A stretch of DNA of 63,854 nt, the filler included, from Lenisia limosa (Eukaryota; Protista; Breviatea): NCBI GenBank assembly GCA_001655205.1. It is 7 parts of 7 records of this genome, joined end to end, with 100 filler letters (N's around TTAATTAATTAA, not from the genome) between each part and the next. Parts side by side here need not be neighbours in the genome. Positions count along the whole stretch, not along the records: positions 21,241 to 37,169 come from LPNZ01010219.1; 6 more parts are not named here. The stretch is one strand, 5' to 3'. Below, one piece after another: positions 21,241 through 37,169 of this stretch; positions within the stretch are counted from its first letter, which is position 1; the number at the start of each line of letters is the position of its first letter. The notes under the pieces were generated by a model. The model did not search any database. It saw only the letters and a program-made list of their open reading frames with translations, and was not told the DNA's origin. A program made the position numbers and the translations under genes.

Positions 21241-21298
21241 AAATAAAAAAAAGTGGACACGGTCATGTCCCTGGACACGGTCATGTCCCCCCACCTAT
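21241..21298 (+). repeat. Dispersed repeat (aaataaaaaaaagtggacacggtcatgtc...cccacctat) with an internal tandem duplication of ggacacggtcatgtccc
   Basis: Near-identical to 63719-63759. Confidence 0.75.
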
Positions 21299-22252
21299 TA
21301 GGTATTGATATATAGATTTTCAAAATTTTGAATTTTGCATAAGTAAGGATAATCTATTGCCCTTCATCAACACGATCACCATGCTCTCCAAGAAAGCCCC
21401 AATGTCAGTTTGTGTTCAGCTTGTTGAATAACCGGATTATTGAACTGTTTGTCCATCTTGGAATTTGTGTCCATCCGAACACTCTGAGACACTATGTCAA
21501 AGAGGACGGCCTCAATATGGTCAGAAGCTGTTTTCAAGGACACGCCCCATCTTGCGGTCCCATATGACAACCTTCAGATCTCCTCAGTTTTTTTATTTGA
21601 CTTATTCAGTATGACACTACTCTCTTGGTAGTATACGAAATTACAGGCGTGAACCTAACTCTGTCCACTGAACGGCCCATGTTTTAACTAACTACGGTGT
21701 TAAAGAGGTTTGTCTGATTTTTCATATTTCTTATATTGACTATTTTAGGTGTTTACGTTATCAAGCTCAGAGAATCACACTGTCCAGTCACTCATGTCGT
21801 CCGCTATCGGGCATTCAATGTCCAAGCTGAACCTTCCAGGGGCTGAAGACACAATCAATGAGTTTGGAGGGGTATTCTGACTTTGTCATCCCTGCGCTTG
21901 AGTATTGTTTTTTAAATAATCGCTGATATTCTAGAATCTGCATACCAACCAATCTCCAACTTATCCAAGTCCGCCACTGTCACTTGAGTGATGCCTCTCA
22001 TCATGGAGAATAAAGGAGCTCTCTCTCTGGTAAGATACATTATACCATATCATACCATATTATCATAGTATATATTATATCGATATTAGTAATAAAATGG
22101 AACAAGTGACGATGGAAATAAAATATGATATCGATAGGATACTACAATAAAATAAGACTTTTAAAATAGGAGGAAAAATACTACTTTGGGGTAGATTTTG
22201 GCATGTACATATTATCTGATACTAATATTCATATACTAGATGAGGATATGTA

Positions 22253-22304
22253 AAGCAATGAAAACAAAAATAACAAGGTTTTATCTGGCCGAAGCCGTCC
22301 ACAA
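22253..22304 (-). repeat. Dispersed 'TTGTGGACGGCTTCGGCCAGATA(C/A)AACCTT' repeat, copy C (most complete)
   Basis: ttgtggacggcttcggccagataaaaccttgttatttttgttttcattgct on the minus strand. Confidence 0.78.
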
Positions 22305-22329
22305 TTAATCATAACCGGCACAATTTATG

Positions 22330-22992
22330 GGCGGCAGCAATACTCATGGCATTCCCTGGAGATACTGCCGTATTTCAAATTGCAATGAAGTATTTTGTAC
22401 CTCTCTTTGCTGGGCTGAGAAAGTTGAATAGTATTTCTTTATTTAGCACGTCTACGTCAATCTCTGTCTGAGAACTTTGATCGGTTTGAAACGTTCTTTG
22501 CCAAAGGAGGTTGCATTGCTGTTGGCCTCAATGACCATTCAGCTGGAATCTGGTTTATTTGCTTCTTATTAACAAACAGGGATTCGCATTGCAACAGACC
22601 GCTTCGTGAAGTTAGTAATGATTTCACGAAGTCTCTTGCATCATCATCATTGTCTGGTGTGAGGGATAAGTTGGCCACACCTGTTGGAATATATTACTCC
22701 TGAATGGCAGACATTTGAGGTCTTGCGCAGGGACTTGCTTGCCATTGTGGCATTCTCAGTCTTCTTTTTTTTTAATACCAGAACACAAGAAGAAGAGAGC
22801 TCGTAAGCTTGTATCTTAGGCTAAGAAGAAGGTTGTATCTCTTCTTGTAGAGGAAGATGAAATGCTCCAGAACATGGAATCGGAAGGTAAACCCATGATG
22901 AACTACTCTTTGGCGCAGTCATACAAGGCAAGGTTCTTGATGGATTGCAAGGCGAATGGGTTGAAGGCTGACGATGTTTTTGTTGAGCTCAT
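22330..22992 (-). CDS. Small multi-exon hypothetical protein
   Basis: MSSTKTSSAFNPFALQSIKNLALYDCAK..., ANLSLTPDNDDDARDFVKSLLTSRSG. Confidence 0.4.
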
Positions 22993-23700
22993 TGAATAAA
23001 AGATGTTGGGTAGAGTCTTTCTTTGTTTTTTTTCCTGAAAAGGTTTCAATGAAAAGTTCTTTCCAGCCACCATTTGTCCAATTTCTGACTAACCATTATT
23101 GTATAATATGAATACTTAGAGCTATAATATAGTATGATATCATATATTGTATATACATATAGTATATATAATATAAATAATATATACTGTCATATATTAT
23201 GTATATACTATTTATAATGGTAGACAAAAATCATGTGTATGTCGCGGCGGTGTAACTGTAATGTAGCGTTGAAATACTATTCATTACGTTTACTATGTTG
23301 TAGGTAAATATTGCACTTACCAAACATTAAACCCCAGAATTTGTTATACAAAAACTAGAAATATTTGCAAGTACTTCAGGAGTCAATAATGTATATCAAA
23401 AAACATAATAAACAGAACATGAGACAGACAGACCTTTATCAAATAACAGCTACTGAAACAACCCGCAACACAACACGTAGGCTAGGAGTCAAGGCTCGAT
23501 TTGCTAGGAACATGAGGTTCGGACCAAAACAAAATGGGTTGAAAGAAACACAAAGTTCTTTAGATTTATGGCAATACGATTTCATTCTATCAAATCAAGA
23601 CTATTATTCTATGATATTTGAGACCTTTTAAGATACAAATGTCAATAATGGTAAAATTCAGCTCACAGCAGGCCTTTTGCGCTTCAGGGGTGGAGGAGTC

Positions 23701-24338
23701 TCAAGAGCAGAGGACGAGGTCTCCAAAAGGGAAGGATGAAATGGATGGCATCTTGGTCCAAACTGACGTGTACGGTGAATCTTCGGAGTCATCGGTGACC
23801 GGGAAGGCGGCAACGAAAAGCTCTTCGAGACGTTCAATAAGGTCCTCAGCGTCCTCATCACTGGAGCTGATCTCCTCGCTCACAGCAAAGCCGGGAGCAG
23901 CAGAGAGACCGTTGGCAAGCTCGGACCGTAGCATGAAGAAGCCATGCTCGAGAAGCTCCTCTTCACTCATTGGAGCGAAGGCAGCGATAGCATCAAGAAC
24001 CGAACTGGACACAACCTCCTCAACGTCCAGGAATTCCGTGTTCTTCTGGAAGAATCTGTGGCGAACGGCGTGGAGCTTGGACAGGACAGCCTTCTTGATG
24101 GGCTCAGGTTCAAAACTTTCCGGCCACAAGCGCTTCTCAAGGATGAGGATGTCCTTCTTGATGGCTAGGAAAGTGAAAATAATAGTGTAATGTTAGCAAA
24201 GCTTGGTTCATGCCTCACAGTTGCCAGGCCGACGGTCCCAATGATGATGCGTAGTTTATTGTTTGATTCAACCAGCCGAATCACATCCGCCTTCATTTCG
24301 GCGTCTGTGCCACCAGCAACAGTGATGAGTTGGAACAT
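23701..24338 (-). CDS. Two-exon hypothetical protein with a helicase-C-like snippet and an HRDC-like segment (possible RecQ-derived fragment)
   Basis: AEMKADVIRLVESNNKLRIIIGTVGLAT resembles the helicase-C 'RVLVAT' region. AVLSKLHAVRHRFF...VSSSVLDAIAAFAPMSEEELL resembles HRDC. Similarity is weak. Confidence 0.4.
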
Positions 24339-24801
24339 AGTCAAATGCCGATTAAAAAACATTTTTTGATCTAAGGTGTATGCAGGTAGTATATGGTACA
24401 ACAAAGAGTAGTAGTATAAAATATACAAATGTATTACTATTATTTTTATTACATCATATCATATGATATAATACTATATACTGACTATTACGTTTATTTT
24501 GAAATTCATTTTTTCAACATTTTTTAACATCTTGTGTCCCCATTGAGGGCGGCCATTTGCCGCAGGAAAAGCACATTGGCTAGGCTTTTTGCTGTCAGAA
24601 TGGAGACTAAAAATTATGAAAAATAAAAACTGATTTTTTTGGTCACATTTTGTCACATTTTAGTGACATTTATAAAACAATTGCATTTGGTGAAGATCCT
24701 TGCTAACTGTACTTTCAATTATTTTTGAATTATAAAAGAAATAACGGTATTTAAGTAGTGTTCCTAAATGCAACTGTTCTTTTACGAAGATATAAGCTAA
24801 T

Positions 24802-25920
24802 ATGGTTATTCATTTCCATCCCTCAGTGTCAGTTCACTCTGTAAATGACTCAAAACTTGAAACAGTTAAAATGGCGTCAGTTCTCTCTGCCCCAATCAGG
24901 TATTTATTAAGCGTCACATGAAATGATGTTGTTACGATAGTTCACACTCATATGTCTAAGAATAGAAGGCAGGCTTACGCTGTTTCTTCAAATGCTGGTA
25001 TGCAGCATTCCGCTGAATCATGGGGAACTGGAAGGGCCGTTGCTCGTATACCTCGAGTTTCTGGAGGTGGTACTCATCGTGCTGGCCAAGCTGCATTTGG
25101 TAATATGTGCCGTAAAGGCCGTATGTTTGCCCCCACAAAAACTTGGAGAAAATGGCACAGAAAAATCTCTGTCTCACAGAAAAGATTTGCATTATGTTCC
25201 GCTCTTGCTGCAACTGGAGTTCCTTCTTTAGTTATGGCTAGAGGACATGCTATTGACAGAGTTTCTGAAGTTCCTCTTGTTGTTTCTGACGCAGCAGAAA
25301 GTGTTGCCAAAACATCAGATGCCGTAAGTCTCTTAAAAAGTGTCAATGCGTTTGGTGATGTTGAAAAAGTGGTGTCATCTCGTCAAATTCGGGCTGGCAA
25401 AGGCAAACTTAGAAATAGGCGATTTGTTCAGCGTGTTGGACCTTTGGTTGTTTACAAGCATGATTCCGGTATTGTCAATGTTATTTTTTACATTTTGATT
25501 TAGTCAATGAGAAATATTCCTGGTGTTGAAACCTGCAATGTGAACCACTTGAATCTTCTTAGACTGGCTCCTGGTGGACATTTAGGTAGATTTGTGATTT
25601 GGACAAAATCTGCTTTTGAAACTTTGGATTCCCTTTATGGTAAAAGTGGTGCTCGTTGCAAAATTGCGCGTCCTTGTGTTACCAATTGTGATGCCAACCG
25701 AATTATCAACTCAGAAGTTGTACAGAGTGCTTGTCGTCCTGTTTCTGGTAATACCAACAAAAGATATCTGAAAAAGAACCCCCTTAAGAATATTGGAGTC
25801 TTGTTCCGTCTCAATCCTTTTGCTAAATCTCAAATCCGACGGGAGTTGGTTTCACAATCTATTAAGTCAAAGTCCTCTGTAAGGCAACCCCGTTCTTCTT
25901 CATCCTTTTTATTCTTTTAA
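24802..25920 (+). CDS. RPL4: 60S ribosomal protein L4 (uL4), divergent copy with 21 nt and 24 nt introns
   Basis: APIR|[115 protein letters not shown]...LNPFAK. Confidence 0.95.
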
Positions 25921-26099
25921 TTTTTTTTGAATGTATCTTTCAGTGGATACCACTAGAGCGTATTTTGTGAATATAGTTGGCTTGCAGCACGAGTTCCGGA
26001 TTTTCGTCTAACATATCTTTTAAATATATTTCAGAGATGTTGGACGAAAATCCGTAACTCTACCTTCGCAGAGATCTGGACCAAGCGGTGTACCAAATG

Positions 26100-27700
26100 A
26101 ATTAATATAAGTGTCGCCCCTGTCCCCTGCTAGTTTCCGGAGTATAATTTTTTGCTGTCAATCCTTACTCCTGACTGTTTAGGACATTTCTTCCAAGAAG
26201 CCACATCGACTTTATCATAGAGGTGGACAGACAAGAGTCGAAGCTCTACCCCCATCCATATTACAGACTCTTTCTAAAGATTTAATTTTGAATTTGTTCG
26301 GTCTTGCAACCAATACTACAGAGATAGTAGAAGACAACTTGGCATCCTGAATGGTGTTTGGTCGGGGGTCATTGTAAATGGCCCTCCTTTTCCAAGAAGT
26401 TCAAGCATTAAAGGTTTGAACAGTTTCCTCGATGTCGACTCGATCTAGTGACTCGACAATCTTTTTCTTAGTCCCCAATGTTGTATTATGCACCGCCTTG
26501 GACTGACTGATTTGGGTTGGGGGTTCTTCCATTTCACAGTGCGTACCACAAAGTCGATTCCTTTAGAATTTCTAGCTGCTCGAATTATGTTTGTTAGAAT
26601 CCCCAACTGCCGCCCTCTTTATCGCATAAAGAAAATGGAACGAGCAAAAGCGAATGAATAAGGTCGAGGTACGAAGGCCTGAAGGTCTGCTGAAGTCTTT
26701 AGCCAACTCCTTCATACTAAATTATCCTGTCTGTATTGAAGGGATTTCACTGTCAAACTGTGTTAAAAGTGATGCGGCAGCCCTCACACCTTGTTGTTGC
26801 GCATCTTCGAAGTCAACATGAAGTTGGTCGATGAGAAAGCGTGACTCTTTTTCATCTGGAAGGCGAACTTGTTTCTGTACTTGATTGTAACCCAGGCGTA
26901 CAACGAGCTGTCCTTAAAAACATTGAAGGCGCGAAAAAGTCTTCACCAGAGGTTGTAGCAAGTTGTCGGAAACAGGGTGCAGTTAGGGAACAGCCCAACT
27001 CCAGTGAATTCCAACACCTTAATATTCTTTGGGAGCAAGATTTTACGTTCATCCAGGTGGCATTTTTGGTAAGCAACAGTATTTGCTGTGACCCTTACGT
27101 TAAAAGTGTCAATTGAAGGAGTTGATTTCGGTAAAGAAAAATTCACCGGTGTATTAACAAGCGAGGAAGCAGTGGGCTTAGCGCCTGATTGATGTCGCAA
27201 CAGATTTCCAGCAACAGTGTGACTGATCTGAGAATTGAACCTTTTCTTAAACGGAAGAGGGTGACAGTGTGTATCACAGACAGGGCATGAAGATGGTGTT
27301 GCCTTAGTATATAAGAATAAACCGGCGACACATCAAACCTTCTCCCATTTCCAAGGGATGGTGACGTGGTGTACTTTCCTCTGTTTTGGAACTGCGGCAT
27401 GTTGAACAGGATGTGACGTCAGCACCACACAGCCGACGTGGTCGTCAAATGGGGAATAGCTGATAGTTTGTTATAATATACACATATTTTCTGATTCCGA
27501 AAGATGAGGTTGATGGTCGAAATCGGAGAGCCAGTCACACCAGGTGGCGGACAGCCGTTCTTCTTGTCCTCCATGACATCAGGGTCTAAGAGGGGTGAAA
27601 ATCTACGTACGCATCCTCTTGTTGACTGGGGAGGAAAGCGCCTCTCGATGAGCATCCCGCAGAAGGTCTCTTAGCGTGAAACATCTTGGCGAATTATTAT
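26100..27700 (-). CDS. Multi-exon hypothetical gene with short introns (may continue upstream through exons at ~28050-29700)
   Basis: Phase-consistent exons ERLSATWCDWLSDFDHQPHLSESEN|YSPFDDHVGCVVLT...WKWEK|ATPSSCPVCDTHCHP...; RLQKQVRLPDEKESRFLIDQLHVDFEDAQQQ. Confidence 0.45.
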
Positions 27701-28629
27701 TTTTTAAAAAACTAAACAGGTGGGGGGAGGAGTAACACAATATTAAGGATGATGATTAACGCTTTGTTTTTCATACAGTGTATAGAATGGGGGGGTCCCA
27801 TTTTTGAAGAAATTGTTGTTCAGGAAGTACACGTCACCAAATTAGAATTATTCTGTTTTTAAAAGAATTGTTTAAAAACGTGGAAGAGCGTCAAGGTAGC
27901 AAACATTGTTCCTCCAAGTGAGTGCAGTTCGCTAAACAGTCAACAAAATAAGCTGCCTACGGTGTCACGTGAAGTCGGTACCAATCAAGAACAGGCTGAA
28001 TTTCCTCACCTACATGAGTCTAGTTGATTTTGAAACATAAATTTGAATATTGAGGGGCAACAAACTAAGTCGCCGCATGGAGGGTCTTCGGTGCCCCAGA
28101 CCATTGGCAAGGGCGGTAGTTGGTGGGAAGAGTCCCGTTCCGTGGCTCTGGTTGCCTGTTCCCATTTCTGAAAATCCTTAAATAGTAAGTAATTTAGAAA
28201 GTGATGCCTACCACATGACTGTCATCTGGCAGAGGACTACCAGCAACCCAAGTTGACAAGACCTAGCTTTGTCTAAATGATCGTTGAGTTGAAGCAGAAG
28301 TGTTTTTTTAAAAAAATGGAACCAATTAAAGTTGGATTCCAGGAGCAGCATAGAGTTCAACGATAAAACAAACTGTGAACAAAGAAATGGGTTAACAATT
28401 AATAAACAAATAAGAAAACAATAAAGGGGAGTGAGAAAGGAATAATTTGGTCATATGAGCCCTCTAGGGAAGTAAAATAATAGAAGACAAACCTTCGATT
28501 GAAGCAATCAAATAAATACATTCTAAGAAAAAAACAGAACTCAAGACAGTTGAACTCATAGCTGATCCAAGGGAATGCATAATATAAGTATTTTTTTTTG
28601 TATAATACACAGATTGGCCACATTGGAGG

Positions 28630-29690
28630 CCCTAAGACCCCAAAGGAAGGAGAGGGATATCATTAACTAAACCAATCAATAAACAATAAACCCTTGGACT
28701 ATTTAGAATTTCAATCCTACTGCCATCATGCTTGGTGAGAGCATCAGTTGTTTGGAGGTGGGCCAGGATGCCACGCGCTTGGTTGAAGGTCATCACATTC
28801 TTCGACCGCTTCACCTAATATGTGATTTAACCCCCCCCCCCNNNNNNNNNNNNNNNNNNNNNNNNNNNNNNNNNNNNNNNNNNNNNNNNNNNNNNNNNNN
28901 NNNNNNNNNNNNNNNCGGCCTCCTTCATTGCCTTGTCAGCAGCTTGATTGCAAACGTCTTGAACTTCGATGTTGGCATCAAGATTCTTCAAAAGGTAAAA
29001 TATCAAAGAAACCCCAACCAAGATAAAACAATTCTAATACCAATTTCTGATAGAATACGGCCAAGAGAGAGGAAAGAGCCAAATATAATGAAAACTGTGC
29101 AAATTTTAGAAGAGTCAAAATCTGCACACTTTCCTCTATTTTACAGAAATCCCAAATCCTTTGCCAACTACCCAACCTACACTATTCTCTATGCTAGTTG
29201 ACGCTATTTAGAGGTCTCAAAAAAGGTGAATATCAAGAAAAGTTGACAAGATTTTTCTACTGGCAGCGGTTTATTTCATAAAATGTGAGCGTCTACGCTC
29301 ACTTAGGTCTTACAGTGTAAATACTGATTAAAGAGACTATCAAGGTCATCCCATTAAACTGGACTCCTTTTCTCTGAAACTTTTGTTAAACTAACTCTCA
29401 TAGGAAATCGGTGTTGTCACTTTACACCTTGCGATTTTCTTCTTTGATTTTCGTCATCATCAATTCCTTAGACGTTTCCACGTCTACCTCCAACGCTGCC
29501 GTCAGTCGCGGTCTCCGCGGTCGTAGTCGCGTCGGTACGTAGGCGGGGACGGACCGCGTGATGGGGTTTGCTGCGAGCGGTAATAACATCGGCAAACAAA
29601 CGAGCCATCTTCTTTGCCGCAAGAGAGGCCTTCAGACATTCCAACGCCGTGTTCAAGAACGTTCGGATGGCTGTAGACTGGGCATTATCA
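28630..29690 (-). CDS. Hypothetical exons
   Basis: RVIKQASDNAQSTAIRTFLNTALECLKASLAAKK; DANIEVQDVCNQAADKAMKEA; VKRSKNVMTFNQARGILAHL. Gene structure unresolved. Confidence 0.35.
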
Positions 29691-30299
29691 GACGCCTGCT
29701 TGATGACTCTGGTGGTTAACCAATTTTATGATTTTGCACTACTTTTGACTGAAAAATCCGGGTTTGATTCGGAAAATGAAAAAGCGTTCGCGTTCATGTG
29801 AGTGTTCGCGTTCATGTATGGTCACCTATGTAGTATACATAACAGGGAATGTGAATACAAAATTATGCCAATAGTTTAAGTAATTATGGTTTTGGCAATA
29901 TTTCATGATAGTCCATAATTTGATCATCGATATCGGGGGGAGTCAAATTTGAAAATTTATGAAACAAAAAAAAGGGGGCAGCTCTGTTAGCTGAATTGTG
30001 TCTTGAAGATGATATCAGACTTTGACAAGGGTGGGATATGAAACGATATGATATATATTATGAGCAATATCAATAGTAATATTTTATATCATATGTACAT
30101 ATCGATATATAATATATAATATCATATAATATCCTTTGTTTCTGTGAGTGATATATCTACATATCATATAACATAGTCACTCATATATTTTTTTTTCACC
30201 ATCAATGGATCCTTGATGAAGCATTATTTATACTTGATTTCTAGTACTATCTATGGTCTGATAACTCTTGTACCCAAAATAAATAACTATGCCATTCCT

Positions 30300-30720
30300 T
30301 TTTGACCCACTTACAGGAGGATGAAGGTGGGGGGCACGCTTTCTGCGGTGCTAAAAATATTACAGTTATTGAGAAGACAATAAGAATTCGATACTTTTAC
30401 CCAGTTAACCTTTACTGGAGGAACTTTTGGAGTTGGAGCAGAAAGGGTGGAGAGAGGTGGAGGCATCGGGCCGGTAAACGTGATACAAAAACTCAATCTC
30501 TGAGTCAGTAAGCTCCTCAGTGTGGCTGAACTGGGCAGTGGTCGGGGCATAGCATTTCCTTGTGATGTAAGCCACAGCGGCGGTCAGACTCTGCCTAATA
30601 CATCCGATTTGCTTGACCTGTTCAGTGAGATCTGACCCCCCTCTTCCCACCATTATATTATTTGCAACAAGTTGTGCTTCAAAAGTCCACAAATAAAAAC
30701 CATGACATACTTGAAACTCG
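30300..30720 (-). CDS. Hypothetical exons
   Basis: Open, higher-GC minus-strand segments (ORFs 30405-30692 and 30311-30550). Confidence 0.3.
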
Positions 30721-31547
30721 GAGAGTAAGCCAAGACATGATATTACAAGAATCGGCTTGGGGATCTGTTGGGCATAAGGCCAACTAGTTTAAATCTTTCT
30801 CTAACCGCAATTCCCCCTCCCCCAAAGCGACTGGNNNNNNNNNNNNNNNNNNNNNNNNNNNNNNNNNNNNNNNNNNNNNNNNNNNNNNNNNNNNNNNNNN
30901 NNNNNNTCAGCAACAGCCAGTCTCACTTTAAAATAATCAGTCAAAGATATGAAAACAACACAAAGACAAAGGCTTACCACAGAAACTGCTGAAATTGTGC
31001 TTTATTACGTGGTTACGCAAGACAAACAGTGCGCTTTTGACGTGAGACTGGATTCTTCTCGGGGGGCTGAACTTCGGAGACACACCTTAAATTTTTACTA
31101 GAGAAAAGCGAGTTTTTGAGCTTTTAAATGTTAATACGAGGTAAAGCGACCGACTCTGTTCAAAAAAACCCTTGTTCTATTGTTACCTCTAATAACTAGG
31201 AATTATTAATCAAAAACCTGGGGTGGAAATAGTGAATTACCAAGTGTTGCATAGGTACATAAAACCATCATACCTTTCCGCGAGAGTCATTCATCGAGTC
31301 GTATCGCAGGCGTACGTCAGTAACCTGCTTCATCTTCAGACAAATACACCGCGCTTCTTCTCTACATAAAGGGCGTCCACCTTCTCGTACATGAACTCCA
31401 CCTGTTTTATGAGAGCAAACCACTTGAAAACACTTCTTGATAATATTACCAACTAGTGAATCATAAATTTCGTAACATGTTCTAATACTACTACTTTCAA
31501 TCCTTTCAATTTATCCAAATTTATCCATAATTTATCGCAACTTTAGG

Positions 31548-31573
31548 CTTTTTTGGAACCGAAGTAAAGTTCA
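31548..31573. mobile_element. MITE copy 4, single degenerate TIR only
   Basis: ttttttggaaccgaagtaaagttc matches the right TIR of the family. Confidence 0.5.
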
Positions 31574-32128
31574 GATTATCTTCCTTCTAAGCCTGAAACT
31601 ATGGTCCAATAATAACAATAACAAAACAACATATGATGCTAATAGGACTGCCCCAACAAACGGCCTCTGTGTCCTTGAGGTATGTCCGCTCGCCATCTTC
31701 CAAGTGTTATAAGATATCTAACATTACCTCCTGATAATAACTTGAATTAGGCCAGCGTCTACTTGAAGAAGATTTGTCAACATCTCCGCTGGCTCTGATG
31801 AACCTAAGGGCCGCCTTGATGACGTCCCACATGGCTACTGGTCCATCTGCCACACGTCGCAGCATCCTGGTTCTATTGAGATGACCAAAGAGCCGAGCGA
31901 AGGCTTTTGAGGTTTTGGGTCATGCATCTCAAAATTGCAATTTCACTGTTCTTCGAGCAGATGATATGCATGTAATGAGGTTCATATGCTCGCGATCCTA
32001 CATTAGGTCATTAATTGTTATTTTGAGTTTTAAAGCCGCAGAAACCAATTTTTAGCCCAGTTTTCATACCACATTCAATTTCTGGTTCGTAAGTGAAACA
32101 TTTACACCAATGTTATATAGGTTGGTGT

Positions 32129-32570
32129 TTAAAACCGCGAACATGATATAAACCGCGAACAAGAGTCAAATTCGCTTGATTTATTTACATCTTTTACCAT
32201 ATTTTCGCCCATTTATGGGTAATTTACGCTCATTTTTTGCCCAATTTGTCTCGTATTCTCTACTTTAATGCCTCTAGGTTACTCAAGAGTGGAAATAATC
32301 AAATCTGTGGTACAAGAACGTCTTTACTTTATGGCAGGGACAATTATAGGCCCATAATCAGTGTTTTTTATTTATTTCGCATGAAAAGTTGAAGTACCAT
32401 AAAGGTGGTACTCCTGCCTATTCTTATAAATAAAACCTTGTATAAAGGAGTGTTTCGGGCGATAATTTGCAAAAAATGCGAAAGAGGCGTAAATAAGGAG
32501 CGTATTGACTCAAAATTTGAAAGAAAAGCCTCCTTTTTTTTCGCGGTTTTAATCATGTTCGCGGTTTTAA
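32129..32570. mobile_element. ~440 bp non-autonomous TIR element with a doubled AAACCGCGAA motif in each TIR
   Basis: ttaaaaccgcgaacatgatataaaccgcgaa (32129) versus ttcgcggttttaatcatgttcgcggttttaa (to 32570). AT-rich, non-coding interior. Confidence 0.65.
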
Positions 32571-34272
32571 CTATATATGCACGCCCGGCTAAACCCTATA
32601 CAACCCTATAATTTTTTAAACAAACAAATTGAGATCCTTTTTTGACATTTTACAAACTTTTTAACCTGTTAAACCTCCAAAAAGGAAAAAAATAATAAAG
32701 ATGCAGGTTATACAAATCATTGTTTTTTTTTGTGTTACCCCCCCCCCCCNNNNNNNNNNNNNNNNNNNNNNNNNNNNNNNNNNNNNNNNNNNNNNNNNNN
32801 NNNNNNNNNNNNNNNNNNNNNNNNNNNNNNNNNNAAAAGTTATCAGCTATAAGACAAATCTCAAATATGAACCACAATCATTATTGGAAGAGATACATGT
32901 AAATGGTGTCATTAATTCGGAAAAGGTGTTGAGAATCCCTTGATTTGAAAAAAAAAATATGACGAAAAAAAAAAAGGAAAATATGATTAAATCCACAGTA
33001 AAAAATGACGTTTCAAAAATTCCCATGTGTATTTTATGAGATATATATCACGTCACTTTTTTTTATCATTTTCACACGTCTGAACTATCATTTTCCACGC
33101 AGTGATATGTTTTGCCATATCCCCGAGGGTCTGCGTCGAGGGGATATGAGCTATCATATACTACACGATGAAATATAAGAAATGTCATTGTGAGTGATCT
33201 CAAGCAAAAAGGTCGAAATTCGTCATATAAAAAACATTTCTTACAACAAAATTCAGTGAAGCAGAGCCAAGATGTCCAATATGATGTTTCAGTTTCCATA
33301 GCAAAGGCGACCTTAAAAAAGTGAAGCATTTTGCTCAATTTATCCGTAATTATGTAACAGTGTTTCTTTTCTGTTCTTTCTAAAAGATGAAGTCAGGTTT
33401 TGTTGCCAGTTAAAAAGGATTTACCTAATATGTAACTAATGTAAAGTGATGCAGTATTTATAGGTTTTTTTTACTTTTTTTTCCCCCTTCCTTTTTCTGC
33501 TTTCTCAAGTTAAACGATGGTTTTCCTCATTGGATCCTCTTACTGCATTGAATAAGAGAACTGGTGTTTTTTGAGCAAGATCTTGTTTAACAAGAAGGTT
33601 TGTTAGTGTATTTACTGTGCTGATTGACACTAATAGGTTCTTTACTTGTCAAAACGAAGGATTTCTTCTCTTACTGTTGAATGCTGGAAACTTGAAGTCA
33701 AAGACTGCTTCTTGGACGTTTACTAAGCTTTCTTATCAAAGAAATATCAGTTTTCAAAAAGTTTTGGGGTGATCAGTTTCTTCATGATATGTCGAAGGTG
33801 TGCCTGGGAATCGTTTTAGAAGATAGTTCAAGATGATTCATTCTTTTCTATTGATATTCTTTTTGGTTGATAGAGAGTTTCTTTAGAGAATGATCCACTG
33901 GTGCTTTTCAAGGATCTTATCAAGAGTATTCTAAAAGTTGCTGGGTTCCTCCTTTACTCTTCTTTTCTTTATTGTCCTTTGTAGTTCCTAGCACTATAAA
34001 CAAAATATAAGCAATTAATCATGATTTCAGGAGTTCAATTGCTCTCAACTTCCTCCGCAACTGATCGATCACGCTGAAGACCTGTCCTTCGGGGAGCATC
34101 ATCAATGGGGTTTTGGAAGGAATTGAAGTGTTTTTTGCACGTATATTTGTGTCGATTTTATATGAGAAATTGGGGTTTATGAACATTCCTTTCTGCCATT
34201 TGTGCAGCCGAAATGCTGCCATTTTCTTTCTGTGTCTGAACAACGCAAATAATGACTATTCACCCAAGATAA

Positions 34273-35332
34273 ATATCCACGAGTGATATGATCATATGAC
34301 CGACTTTCAAGTCGAAATGATGAAGGAAGATCACACTGTGGTTCATCCATTGAGACCAACATACTATAAGCATATATATCATATACTATCTATCACATTG
34401 TAAATTAACACTTGTGGTAAAAGTTTGGAATGGTATTCATGGAGTGCACACATGGGAGGTGAAATAAAACTTCTATAAGATACTTCCTTTCCCCCAATAC
34501 TTCCCACCTGACTTTTCGTCTTGTACTGAGTGGCCGAACTCGGACAAAGTAGTAATGGCTTGCTCCACTGTTGGCTTTCTTTGGGCTTTTACAGGGAGTT
34601 TTCATTACGCCTTTATATTGGGCTTTTCTAAGGCATTTGATGGGGTTACTGAGGGATTTTACTCTTCTTGTTATTGCACACAAATATTCTAACTTCCTTC
34701 TATGTGATACTGTGGTAAGGTGACACGTAATTGAGTGTGAAGAGGACAGCTACGCTGGCTTTTCTGGTCAGATCTCTCTGAGATCCGGACCAAAGCCCCA
34801 TAGAGCCCTATCATTTATTAATACAGTTGTTAGACATAAACACATTAGGTGGCACAATGGGGTTTGCGGAGGGAGGGATGTATATACAAACGAACATATA
34901 CAATACATACATACAAACATTGTATAAATGTACCTGTAGGACCCATTGTCGGCATAGTAGTAATATACCCCCCCCCCACAACATGCATTGATGCGCATTA
35001 TATGATCTCCTCCTGCTTGGAAGCCAGCAACTTGACCTGCCTTAACGAGGCAGATGCGAGATGAAATTAATTGGGGCTCTAAGAGGGCTTTACTTCGGTT
35101 CCAAAAAAAACGGAATTTTTCGAAAAATCCTCGAAAACTGGCGACATTTTACCGTTCTTTTTCATACCAAAGTGAAGCCCTAGCTCCAAGGGACAGTCTT
35201 GATCAATATCTTGAAGACATGATACCTCATATTTCAATGGTACTCAAAAACACTCGGGATTAAAACTCGTGTTATCTATGTTAATCATTTCGACTCAAAC
35301 GTCGGTCATATGATCATATCGCTAGTGGATAT
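34273..35332. repeat. 48 bp inverted repeat pair about 1 kb apart (34273-34320 and 35285-35332)
   Basis: atatccacgagtgatatgatcatatgaccgactttcaagtcgaaatga versus the reverse complement of tcatttcgactcaaacgtcggtcatatgatcatatcgctagtggatat. Confidence 0.75.
35083..35182. mobile_element. MITE copy 5
   Basis: agggctttacttcggttccaaaaaaaa...ttttcataccaaagtgaagcccta. Confidence 0.8.
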
Positions 35333-36241
35333 GGGTTAACATATGATGAATAAGAATACGATCTTCATAATAAATGCTCCCCCCCCCTAGGTTCTACAAC
35401 ACTTTTGATGACATCCCGCCAATAGAAGAAGGCAAAGACCAGGAAGCTGACGATACTACCCTCCAAGTCTTCAGATATCCCTATCAAGCTTACAATCAAG
35501 AACAAACTGACAAATCAAGACTTGTCAACTTTGAAAGGAAGAATGGTTTACTCTTGTTCATATGGCCAAACGAACGTGCAGTTGCAACCGCGAGTTTTAA
35601 GGTGGTGGTTCCATTGGAATTGTTCCATCTCTGACCATTTTGATACATTTTGAAATATTTTCAATTTTGGATAATTATCTCCTGAAATCAGTTGAAAGAG
35701 CCTCTCAGCGTTAAAGTAGTATAGTTAAACTGTACAAGAACATCTCTCTTTTGATGGGAATAAACATGGCGTCTTCCCTCTCTCTTGGGCTAAGCAAATG
35801 ATCATTCTGTTTCATTTATCTTACTGCTTCAGGACTGGTACCAGATTCTTGAGGACTTGATGACCTTCGACCATATCTGGACCCCGCGCGATCGCTTTGT
35901 CGCTTATCACTACCTCACTGTTGAGTTTTTTTGTATTGTTGGGGAGAAGTTTGTTTTGCCCTCTCCTGTTGTTTCTTATGTTAGTATTTTTTATGATAAC
36001 CACCTTGATACACCGTTTTATTTTATTTATACTACACAAGAGTGAGAAAGTGTGCTGTATTGTACATTGTAGAAATAGAATACCATAAAAGCCATAGAAA
36101 TATACAAAGAAACAACTCCATCAACACCATCGAGGCAGAAGGTTGGTGGATTCTAAGACACTATTTATCCCCCCCCTAACCTTGAGGAAAGAGAGTTGTT
36201 TTTTATTTTGTTTTTTTCATAAATTTCCATTTATCACTTGA

Positions 36242-36303
36242 TTTGTTGAGTTTCAGATTATTCGGTTCGTGATTAGTACATTTACGCAAATATTCATTGA
36301 AAT
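36242..36303 (+). repeat. Dispersed ~60 bp repeat, copy b
   Basis: gagtttcagattattcggttcgtgattagtacatttacgcaaatattcattgaaat. Confidence 0.75.
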
Positions 36304-36379
36304 CTTCTTTTTTTGAAACATCTGGTTATTACTTTCGCCCCAATAACTCATGTAGGTTTCTATGGCCAACTATTGCCCA

Positions 36380-37169
36380 CAGCATCATCGTATCATATCA
36401 TACAAATCACATCCACATACAGTAGCGTCAGGGCAGCTGAGCTTGCGCTTCTCGTCATATGTTGCAGCGGCATGCTCACCGATAGTGTTTCTTGGTGAAT
36501 TTTCTTGCCCTACATGCGATCTTTCTTTGTCGAAGGCGGTCTTGAGGTACTCTTTACGAGCTTAACTGGCGGTGAAGATGACGTCAAGCAGGGATTCGTT
36601 GACGTCGATGTTGACAATAGAGTACAAAAAATAAAAATAGACCACTATTTCTTCTTCTTGTTGTGTTTAGTGGTAGCCTTTGCCTTTGCTGCGCGTCGCT
36701 TGGCATTTGTTTTCAGTTCTTTGACACCCTCCACATTCTCAAAGAAAGGTTATTATAGTCAATACAAACTTTATAATGATGTGATATCAAAAATATACAA
36801 CTCTTGATGCAAACCTTTGGGCCACAGGAGAGGCCATGGGCAGAATCAATTCGCTTTTTGCGAAGTACAGTCTCCTAAGTCATCTTCGGCAGCAACGATT
36901 TCGCCTGGCTTCAGTGAAACAGCTCTCTCACCCTACTCATGTTATGATAAATCAATACTAAACACAAGAATGCTGAGGATAAGGAATTTGGGAAGAACAT
37001 GAGGATTGCGAATTATTCGACACATCAATATTTCTTCACACATCAACATTATTGCATACCTTGTTCACCGGGATAATCTCAAAGGATGGCAGTTCTTCAG
37101 TGACTGGATCAATTGCGACAGATTGGGTTATCGCGTTACAAACAGCTGAAGCATGCTCTGAAAGATGGC
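36380..37169 (-). CDS. Multi-exon hypothetical basic protein, 5' truncated
   Basis: Phase-0 joins give EELPSFEIIPVNK|GERAVSLKPGEI|ETVLRKKRIDSAHGLSCGPK|NVEGVKELKTNAKRRAAKAK. Confidence 0.5.

Follow-up and report, generated by a model that had tools for sequence, protein, structure and literature searches.

Few signals in eukaryotic genes are as constant as the AG that closes an intron. U12-type introns tolerate several 3' terminal dinucleotides, their 3' site being set by a short distance of about 10 to 15 nt from the branch point. Introns can also be extremely short, with sizes of about 25 nt in Paramecium, 15 to 16 nt in Stentor and 18 to 21 nt in the nucleomorphs of chlorarachniophytes. Such ultra-short introns occur in ciliates, chlorarachniophyte nucleomorphs, dicyemids and myxozoans, and AG is retained as their 3' signal (PMC5014332, PMC13644364). 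In human U2-dependent introns, TG 3' sites serve as alternative sites only; they are usually minor, have an AG within 28 nt and are "never the sole 3' splice site," and mutations from AG to TG abolish the use of a site (Szafranski et al. 2007, PMC2374985). Human GT-TG introns are known from GNAS and TSPYL2 (PMC4176328). In the tunicates Fritillaria and Oikopleura, noncanonical splicing is genome-wide, with most introns noncanonical at both ends and with changed U1 and U2AF (PMC13326754).

The window analyzed here is the whole stretch of 63,854 nucleotides along which positions are counted, and the gene of interest lies on the piece of it that comes from record LPNZ01010219.1 (21241-37169). The source organism, Lenisia limosa, is a breviate and thus belongs to Obazoa, the group that holds animals and fungi. 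A search of literature other than the original genome paper turned up no account of how long introns are, or which splice signals they carry, in Lenisia or any breviate. We report that positions 24900-24920 are very probably a real ultra-short intron of the ribosomal protein gene RPL4, in which a GT donor (CAG/GTATTT) is joined to a noncanonical TG acceptor (CACATG/A). Since TG is never the sole acceptor in human introns, a sole productive TG in Lenisia was unexpected.

RESULTS

Removal of 21 nt restores the RPL4 reading frame

The uL4/RPL4 gene lies on the + strand, running from an ATG at 24802 to a TAA stop at 25918-25920. Its features are listed below; the three exons were placed by translation, and the spliced coding sequence (CDS) equals the transcript-derived protein P0121 described further on.

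24802-24899, + strand: exon 1, beginning with the ATG, 32 2/3 codons, ending in ...gcc cca atc ag
24900-24920, + strand: probable intron 1, 21 nt, phase 2, GTATTTATTAAGCGTCACATG, GT..TG, 33% G+C
24905-24911, + strand: candidate branch site TATTAAG, picked by eye; its A24910 precedes the 3' cut by 10 nt, and the AG at 24910-24911 is the unused acceptor of a 12-nt intron
24921-25479, + strand: exon 2, 559 nt, Pfam Ribosomal_L4
24939-24940, + strand: nearest downstream AG, 20 nt past the TG; its use would give a 41-nt intron and a frameshift, and the recorded transcript does not use it
25480-25503, + strand: intron 2, 24 nt, phase 0, GTTATTTTTTACATTTTGATTTAG, canonical GT..AG, 17% G+C
25504-25920, + strand: exon 3, including the TAA, Pfam Ribos_L4_asso_C

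The RPL4 open reading frames (ORFs) match Ribosomal_L4 (PF00573, E 1.9e-15) and then the eukaryote-specific L4 C-terminal domain Ribos_L4_asso_C (PF14374, E 9.6e-21), the domain order of the uL4/RPL4 family. In a protein search, exon 2 was 65-74% identical to many uL4 proteins, and the N terminus encoded by exon 1 can be aligned to uL4 homologues. Read without splicing, the frame that opens at 24802 runs through ...SAPIR and YLLSVT into a TGA at 24919-24921 and then goes on in the same frame. Taking out 24900-24920 yields APIR/NDVV instead, with ag and a joined as the codon of Arg33, and an alignment with eight uL4 homologues (against APIRPDIVxFVHT) crosses this junction free of gaps. Residues A30, P31, I32, R33, D35 and V40 are invariant across the alignment. 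Because the APIR-x-D segment is invariant and the homologues show no gap in it, the seven-residue insert that the unspliced gene would carry has no place there.

The expressed form of the protein is on record. The window's own 183-aa ORF is the representative of a protein cluster with three members, namely, two genomic ORFs and the EukProt protein P0121 (EP01086 Lenisia limosa TRINITY_DN40638_c0_g1_i1.p1, 357 aa), whose TRINITY name shows that it was translated from a transcript assembled de novo. Joining 24802-24899, 24921-25479 and 25504-25920 gives a 1,074-nt CDS, and its translation equals P0121 at 357 of 357 residues, without the seven residues encoded by the 21-mer. We enumerated every single deletion around each RPL4 junction and scored each one, at the protein level, on whether it matched P0121. 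Only three cuts fit at the first junction, all of them of 21 nt: 24899-24919 (GG..AT), 24900-24920 (GT..TG) and 24901-24921 (TA..GA). Only GT..TG among them keeps a normal donor (CAG/GTATTT, 24897-24905). At the second junction, 25480-25503 (24 nt, GT..AG) is the only cut that yields P0121.

None of the GT/GC..AG pairs tested for intron 1 reproduces P0121, and, as the three fitting cuts are all noncanonical, no canonical intron can yield the expressed RPL4 protein. With the AG at 24910-24911 as the acceptor, the TGA stays in frame. Donors of the GT/GC type occur in exon 1 in phases 0 and 2 only, with none in phase 1, and each canonical GT/GC..AG pair that keeps the frame open either removes at least a conserved 15-residue block or leaves foreign residues. 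Canonical introns of 12 nt and 41 nt were rejected on account of the stop and the frameshift, respectively. The 21 nt are missing from the mature RPL4 mRNA, their exact removal with restoration of the frame being read at the protein level from the Trinity-derived P0121, and a canonical cut cannot explain this.

Much of this had been anticipated by a sequence-only reading of the same DNA. The letters and the unspliced frame with its in-frame TGA are as that reading gave them, and its proposal that removing exactly 24900-24920 would give APIR/NDVV is what P0121 reads over its full length. The conserved uL4 register that it invoked reappears in the gap-free alignment with its six invariant residues. 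It had also dismissed both AG acceptors, denied exon 1 a phase-1 GT donor, called the second intron a canonical 24-mer and described the rest of the ORF as intact; each of these statements holds, the remaining ORF being identical to the expressed protein. Its TG acceptor is supported both by the failure of the canonical cuts and by a second GT..TG intron in another gene, described below.

The gene is found once, in identical letters in two assemblies

A SPAdes contig from the European Nucleotide Archive (ENA), L001 (NODE_1507, coverage 39), spans window positions 21247-32271 and is identical to the window across RPL4, with the same 21-mer. Five positions differ between the two, none of them within 2.9 kb of RPL4. 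L001 is a separate assembly, since it closes two N gaps of the window. It crosses these gaps at 28842-28915 and 30835-30906, where about 42 and 78 of its own bases are unaligned, and the third window gap (32750-32834) lies beyond it. Both assemblies probably rest on the same DNA reads, and their agreement, though good evidence, falls short of final proof that neither a consensus error nor an allele is involved.

The 21-mer is unique in the window. Among 5.8 billion proteins, the next-best uL4 after the window's own ORF was 74% identical and no second RPL4 copy was found, and a contig search found none that encodes P0121 uninterrupted. An intron-less copy, or one that lacks only the 21 nt, would have joined the same 90% cluster or surfaced in the search. 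The sequence-only reading had named several findings that would count against it. A consensus error that restores AG finds no support in the separately assembled 39x contig, which has the same letters; retention of the 21 nt is contradicted by the transcript protein, which lacks the residues; and an intact canonical RPL4 elsewhere is absent from the protein collection.

Beside RPL4, window positions 22371-24459 are duplicated at L002:2913-6237 with 85-89% identity. This second contig, L002 (NODE_2606, coverage 41, same assembly as L001), is without RPL4 and holds an insertion of 1.18 kb in the place of window positions 24166-24172. On the minus strand, the duplicated segment codes for the C-terminal portion of a RecQ-like helicase, with a weak HRDC match. 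More of this helicase gene, including a VVDEAH motif, is held on L002, and the window copy beside RPL4 looks like a truncated duplicate. A protein search with the HRDC-like exon beside RPL4 found only a miscalled paralogue, and Pfam found nothing on 30 ORF segments of the piece beyond uL4 and the weak HRDC match.

Within the duplicated region, window positions 24218-24154 (minus strand) resemble a longer intron that opens with the donor GTGAGG, has TGCTAAC as a branch motif and ends in a run of pyrimidines and CTAG (54 nt). Splicing to CTAG would put the long downstream ORF out of frame, and the only suitable acceptors are the AGs at 62 or 65 nt. Given this intron-like segment of 54-62 nt with its CTAAC motif, not all Lenisia introns need be tiny. 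On L002, the ENA gene call at L002:4353-5018 (P0125) and others read TGA as an amino acid and run through frames. These calls are artefacts of a prokaryote-style caller applied to eukaryotic DNA, and the protein collection contains them as well.

The same intron ends recur in an SPF30-like gene

The minus strand of L002 carries an SPF30/SMNDC1-like Tudor gene with its ATG at L002:1482. By homology, this gene has two tiny GT..AG introns and a third junction for which there is no GT..AG solution. A query with its Tudor exon against the 50% representative library returned P0129 (eukprot TRINITY_DN1640_c0_g1_i2.p1, 179 aa, Pfam SMN), 100% identical over the exon. The first 172 residues of P0129 equal the L002 exons when these are spliced at three places, each matched by P0129.

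L002:1340-1318, minus strand: SPF30-like intron 1, 23 nt, GT..AG
L002:1175-1154, minus strand: SPF30-like intron 2, 22 nt, GT..AG
L002:967-937, minus strand: SPF30-like intron 3, 31 nt, GTAGTTTTTTTTTATTACGTACAATAATCTG, GT..TG

Besides GT..TG, the third junction admits only TA..GG. Use of the canonical AG that follows 5 nt beyond the TG would give a 36-nt intron with the next exon in the wrong frame. Because GT..TG recurs in an unrelated gene, a one-off artefact is unlikely. No contig encoding P0129 uninterrupted was found in the contig search.

The last seven residues of P0129 (PDRKAHV, then stop) are not encoded in L002, even as 3-residue pieces; downstream of about L002:890 (minus strand), the genome reads WQTFLNKRK in their place. 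This tail could stem from alternative splicing to an exon beyond the contig or from a chimeric Trinity isoform.

Transcript-supported and candidate introns of L. limosa

Five introns of L. limosa are supported by transcripts, with lengths of 21 nt (TG), 22, 23 and 24 nt (AG) and 31 nt (TG). All five have a GT donor, and three of them are fully canonical GT..AG. As the RPL4 intron was picked for its oddness, the fair sample is one TG in four. Introns of L. limosa can thus be ultra-short, and at least two of its genes have an intron for which no acceptor but TG is productive. Both TG-ending introns start with GTA and all three AG-ending ones with GTT, a pattern with a chance of 1 in 10 at n = 5. 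Intron position +3 may covary with the base before the last G, which we take only as a lead.

A census of the 16 kb found that GT..AG segments of 18-30 nt that bridge ORFs exceed other dinucleotide pairs by 1.2-1.6 standard deviations, which is noise. Real tiny introns are not separable in a sequence-only census of this size, which is dominated by chance. Open frames in the piece are bridged by unconfirmed GT..AG segments, AT-rich and 23-28 nt long, at 22423-22446, 22553-22579, 26448-26471, 36015-36040 and 36941-36968 on the + strand and at 27483-27460, 26338-26316, 22627-22602 and 34409-34386 on the minus strand. Several of them have TACTAAC- or TTAAC-like motifs 7-10 nt before the AG. These segments may plausibly be further tiny introns. 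Exact look-ups of 13 ORFs from the piece for more transcripts gave nothing useful.

DISCUSSION

Weighing the alternatives

The junction is known as a protein from a de novo transcript assembly, and the discrepancy could thus lie in the DNA: the true intron might end in AG, with a base wrong or missing in CACATG, or the 21 nt might be an insertion in one allele, strain or paralogue. The assembly versions do differ, at the five positions distant from the gene, and the duplication of 22371-24459 next to it proves that duplications exist in this genome. We nonetheless consider such an error or variant improbable. Both assemblies, one of them at 39x, agree on every RPL4 base, and the site is no homopolymer. 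No second uL4 ORF above 74% identity exists in the searches, the 90% cluster consists of this locus's two ORFs and the transcript, and the contig that carries the duplication lacks RPL4. The 21-mer also opens with a good donor, and its GT..TG ends recur in an unrelated gene. Granted a real intron, its termini might still lie one base to the left (GG..AT) or to the right (TA..GA), with both ends noncanonical. All three cuts give the same protein, and the GG..AT mRNA is identical to the GT..TG mRNA, so that even reads cannot separate these two. Only GT..TG, however, keeps the GT donor common to the other four transcript-supported introns, and it is the sole reading common to both genes, the SPF30-like alternative being TA..GG; we therefore hold shifted termini to be highly improbable.

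Excision by an endonuclease and a ligase, as in HAC1/XBP1 (IRE1) or in tRNA-type bulge-helix-bulge introns, would suit a size in the range of the 26-nt XBP1 intron and a 3' end other than AG. The stem-loops or bulge-helix-bulge that would mark both cut sites are not seen here. RNA from 24870-24950 folds with a minimum free energy of -11.9 kcal/mol (z +0.41), and 134 of 200 shuffled sequences fold at least as well; this lack of a special fold at the site argues against endonuclease-type excision. No Rfam family was found in 23193-37169, the donor is of the spliceosomal type, and neighboring introns of the same size are GT..AG, all of which leaves very little room for a nonspliceosomal route. 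It would take even more to suppose that nothing is excised, the 21 nt being translated with TGA read as an amino acid into a seven-residue insert, or the locus being a pseudogene copy. Since the 21 nt preserve the frame, reassignment of TGA would leave it unbroken, but the transcript protein lacks the seven residues, the homologues leave no room for them in APIR-x-D, the remainder of the ORF is undamaged and matches the expressed protein exactly, and a neighboring ORF ends in TGA. We find this account scarcely credible. A U12-type intron was rejected because its 5' end, GTATTTAT, fails the RTATCCTT consensus.

How a TG acceptor might be chosen

For the GT..TG intron of RPL4, we infer that the major (U2-type) spliceosome does the cutting. 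This is favored by the normal donor context, by a size and AT-richness like those of the canonical neighbors, by the TATTAAG motif and by the lack of both a special fold and an Rfam match. The GT sits in the exon AG/GT context usual for U2-type introns, and the departure from that type is at the 3' end, where TG occupies 24919-24920 in place of AG. By eye, the candidate TATTAAG agrees with TACTAAC at five of seven positions. In the second catalytic step, the last G of an intron pairs with its first G, while the branch adenosine is contacted by the base that precedes this last G. A change from A to U that keeps the G loses only part of the second-step contacts.

In these tiny introns, the 3' site may be picked mainly by a short, fixed distance from the branch point, with the terminal G alone required to pair with the first G of the intron during the second step. 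The AG inside the branch-like motif would be too close for use, and splicing to the next one, 20 nt downstream, would cause a frameshift. As proposed for human TG-AG tandems, this downstream AG may still aid early recognition of the intron, with the TG being selected at the ligation step. More broadly, with TG seen twice here and a possible CG acceptor noted elsewhere by the sequence-only reading, the 3' rule might be relaxed from AG to "any base, then G" in L. limosa and perhaps in breviates, whose ultra-short introns (~21-31 nt) would have such sites as sole productive acceptors in a sizeable share of genes; we advance this tentatively and give it somewhat less than an even chance. If it held, the choice of the 3' site would be set by branch-point distance and the terminal G alone, and competing AG sites that break the frame could provide built-in unproductive splicing for the regulation of genes such as RPL4.

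In Lenisia, introns too short for the usual 3' signals have TG as their only productive acceptor, both in a ribosomal protein gene that is essential and in a gene resembling that of a splicing factor. This makes the organism a natural system for studying the true requirements of the second catalytic step and the way in which tiny introns are measured. There is also a practical side. Gene predictors that allow only GT..AG will break or misframe genes in this genome, and such mispredicted genes affect the proteomes used for phylogenomics of Obazoa.

Comparison with known systems

The Lenisia introns share with human TG sites a GT donor, a TG acceptor and an AG downstream within 28 nt (20 nt in RPL4, 5 nt in the SPF30-like gene), a likeness that is compatible with a choice of TG at the second catalytic step. 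In human tandems, TG is an alternative beside a productive AG, whereas in Lenisia the choice of AG is frame-breaking and an essential gene has no productive acceptor but TG; the one transcript protein on record for RPL4 uses TG. Lengths of 21 and 31 nt are also far below human intron sizes.

In size, RPL4 intron 1 falls among the ultra-short introns, under ~30 nt. Lenisia introns resemble this class in being AT-rich and 21-24 nt long, with no room for a polypyrimidine tract, and in their tightly grouped lengths (21, 22, 23 and 24 nt in the four shortest). The described classes are GT..AG, however, and the RPL4 intron is GT..TG. The tunicates offer the parallel of a nuclear genome in which ends outside GT/AG are normal productive sites, but all Lenisia donors are GT and three of the five introns are canonical. 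With U12-type introns, RPL4 intron 1 shares a branch-like A 10 nt from the cut, yet the branch-like TTATTAAG matches TCCTTAAC at only five of eight positions, and 21 nt is far shorter than known U12 introns.

Green-alga-like RPL4 loci on four JGI metagenome contigs (L048, L053, L057 and L063) have a GT..AG intron of about 250 nt in this part of the gene (SPIRP, cc/gt..ag/T). It interrupts, in phase 2, the codon that follows Arg33 and so sits exactly 3 nt further downstream than the intron of Lenisia, which suggests an old intron position, though not the same position as that of Lenisia. The JGI scan found no uL4 above 63% identity and hence no orthologous intron from a close relative. Taken against these systems, a sole productive TG acceptor in breviate introns of 21-31 nt is a new combination and not a new kind of element.
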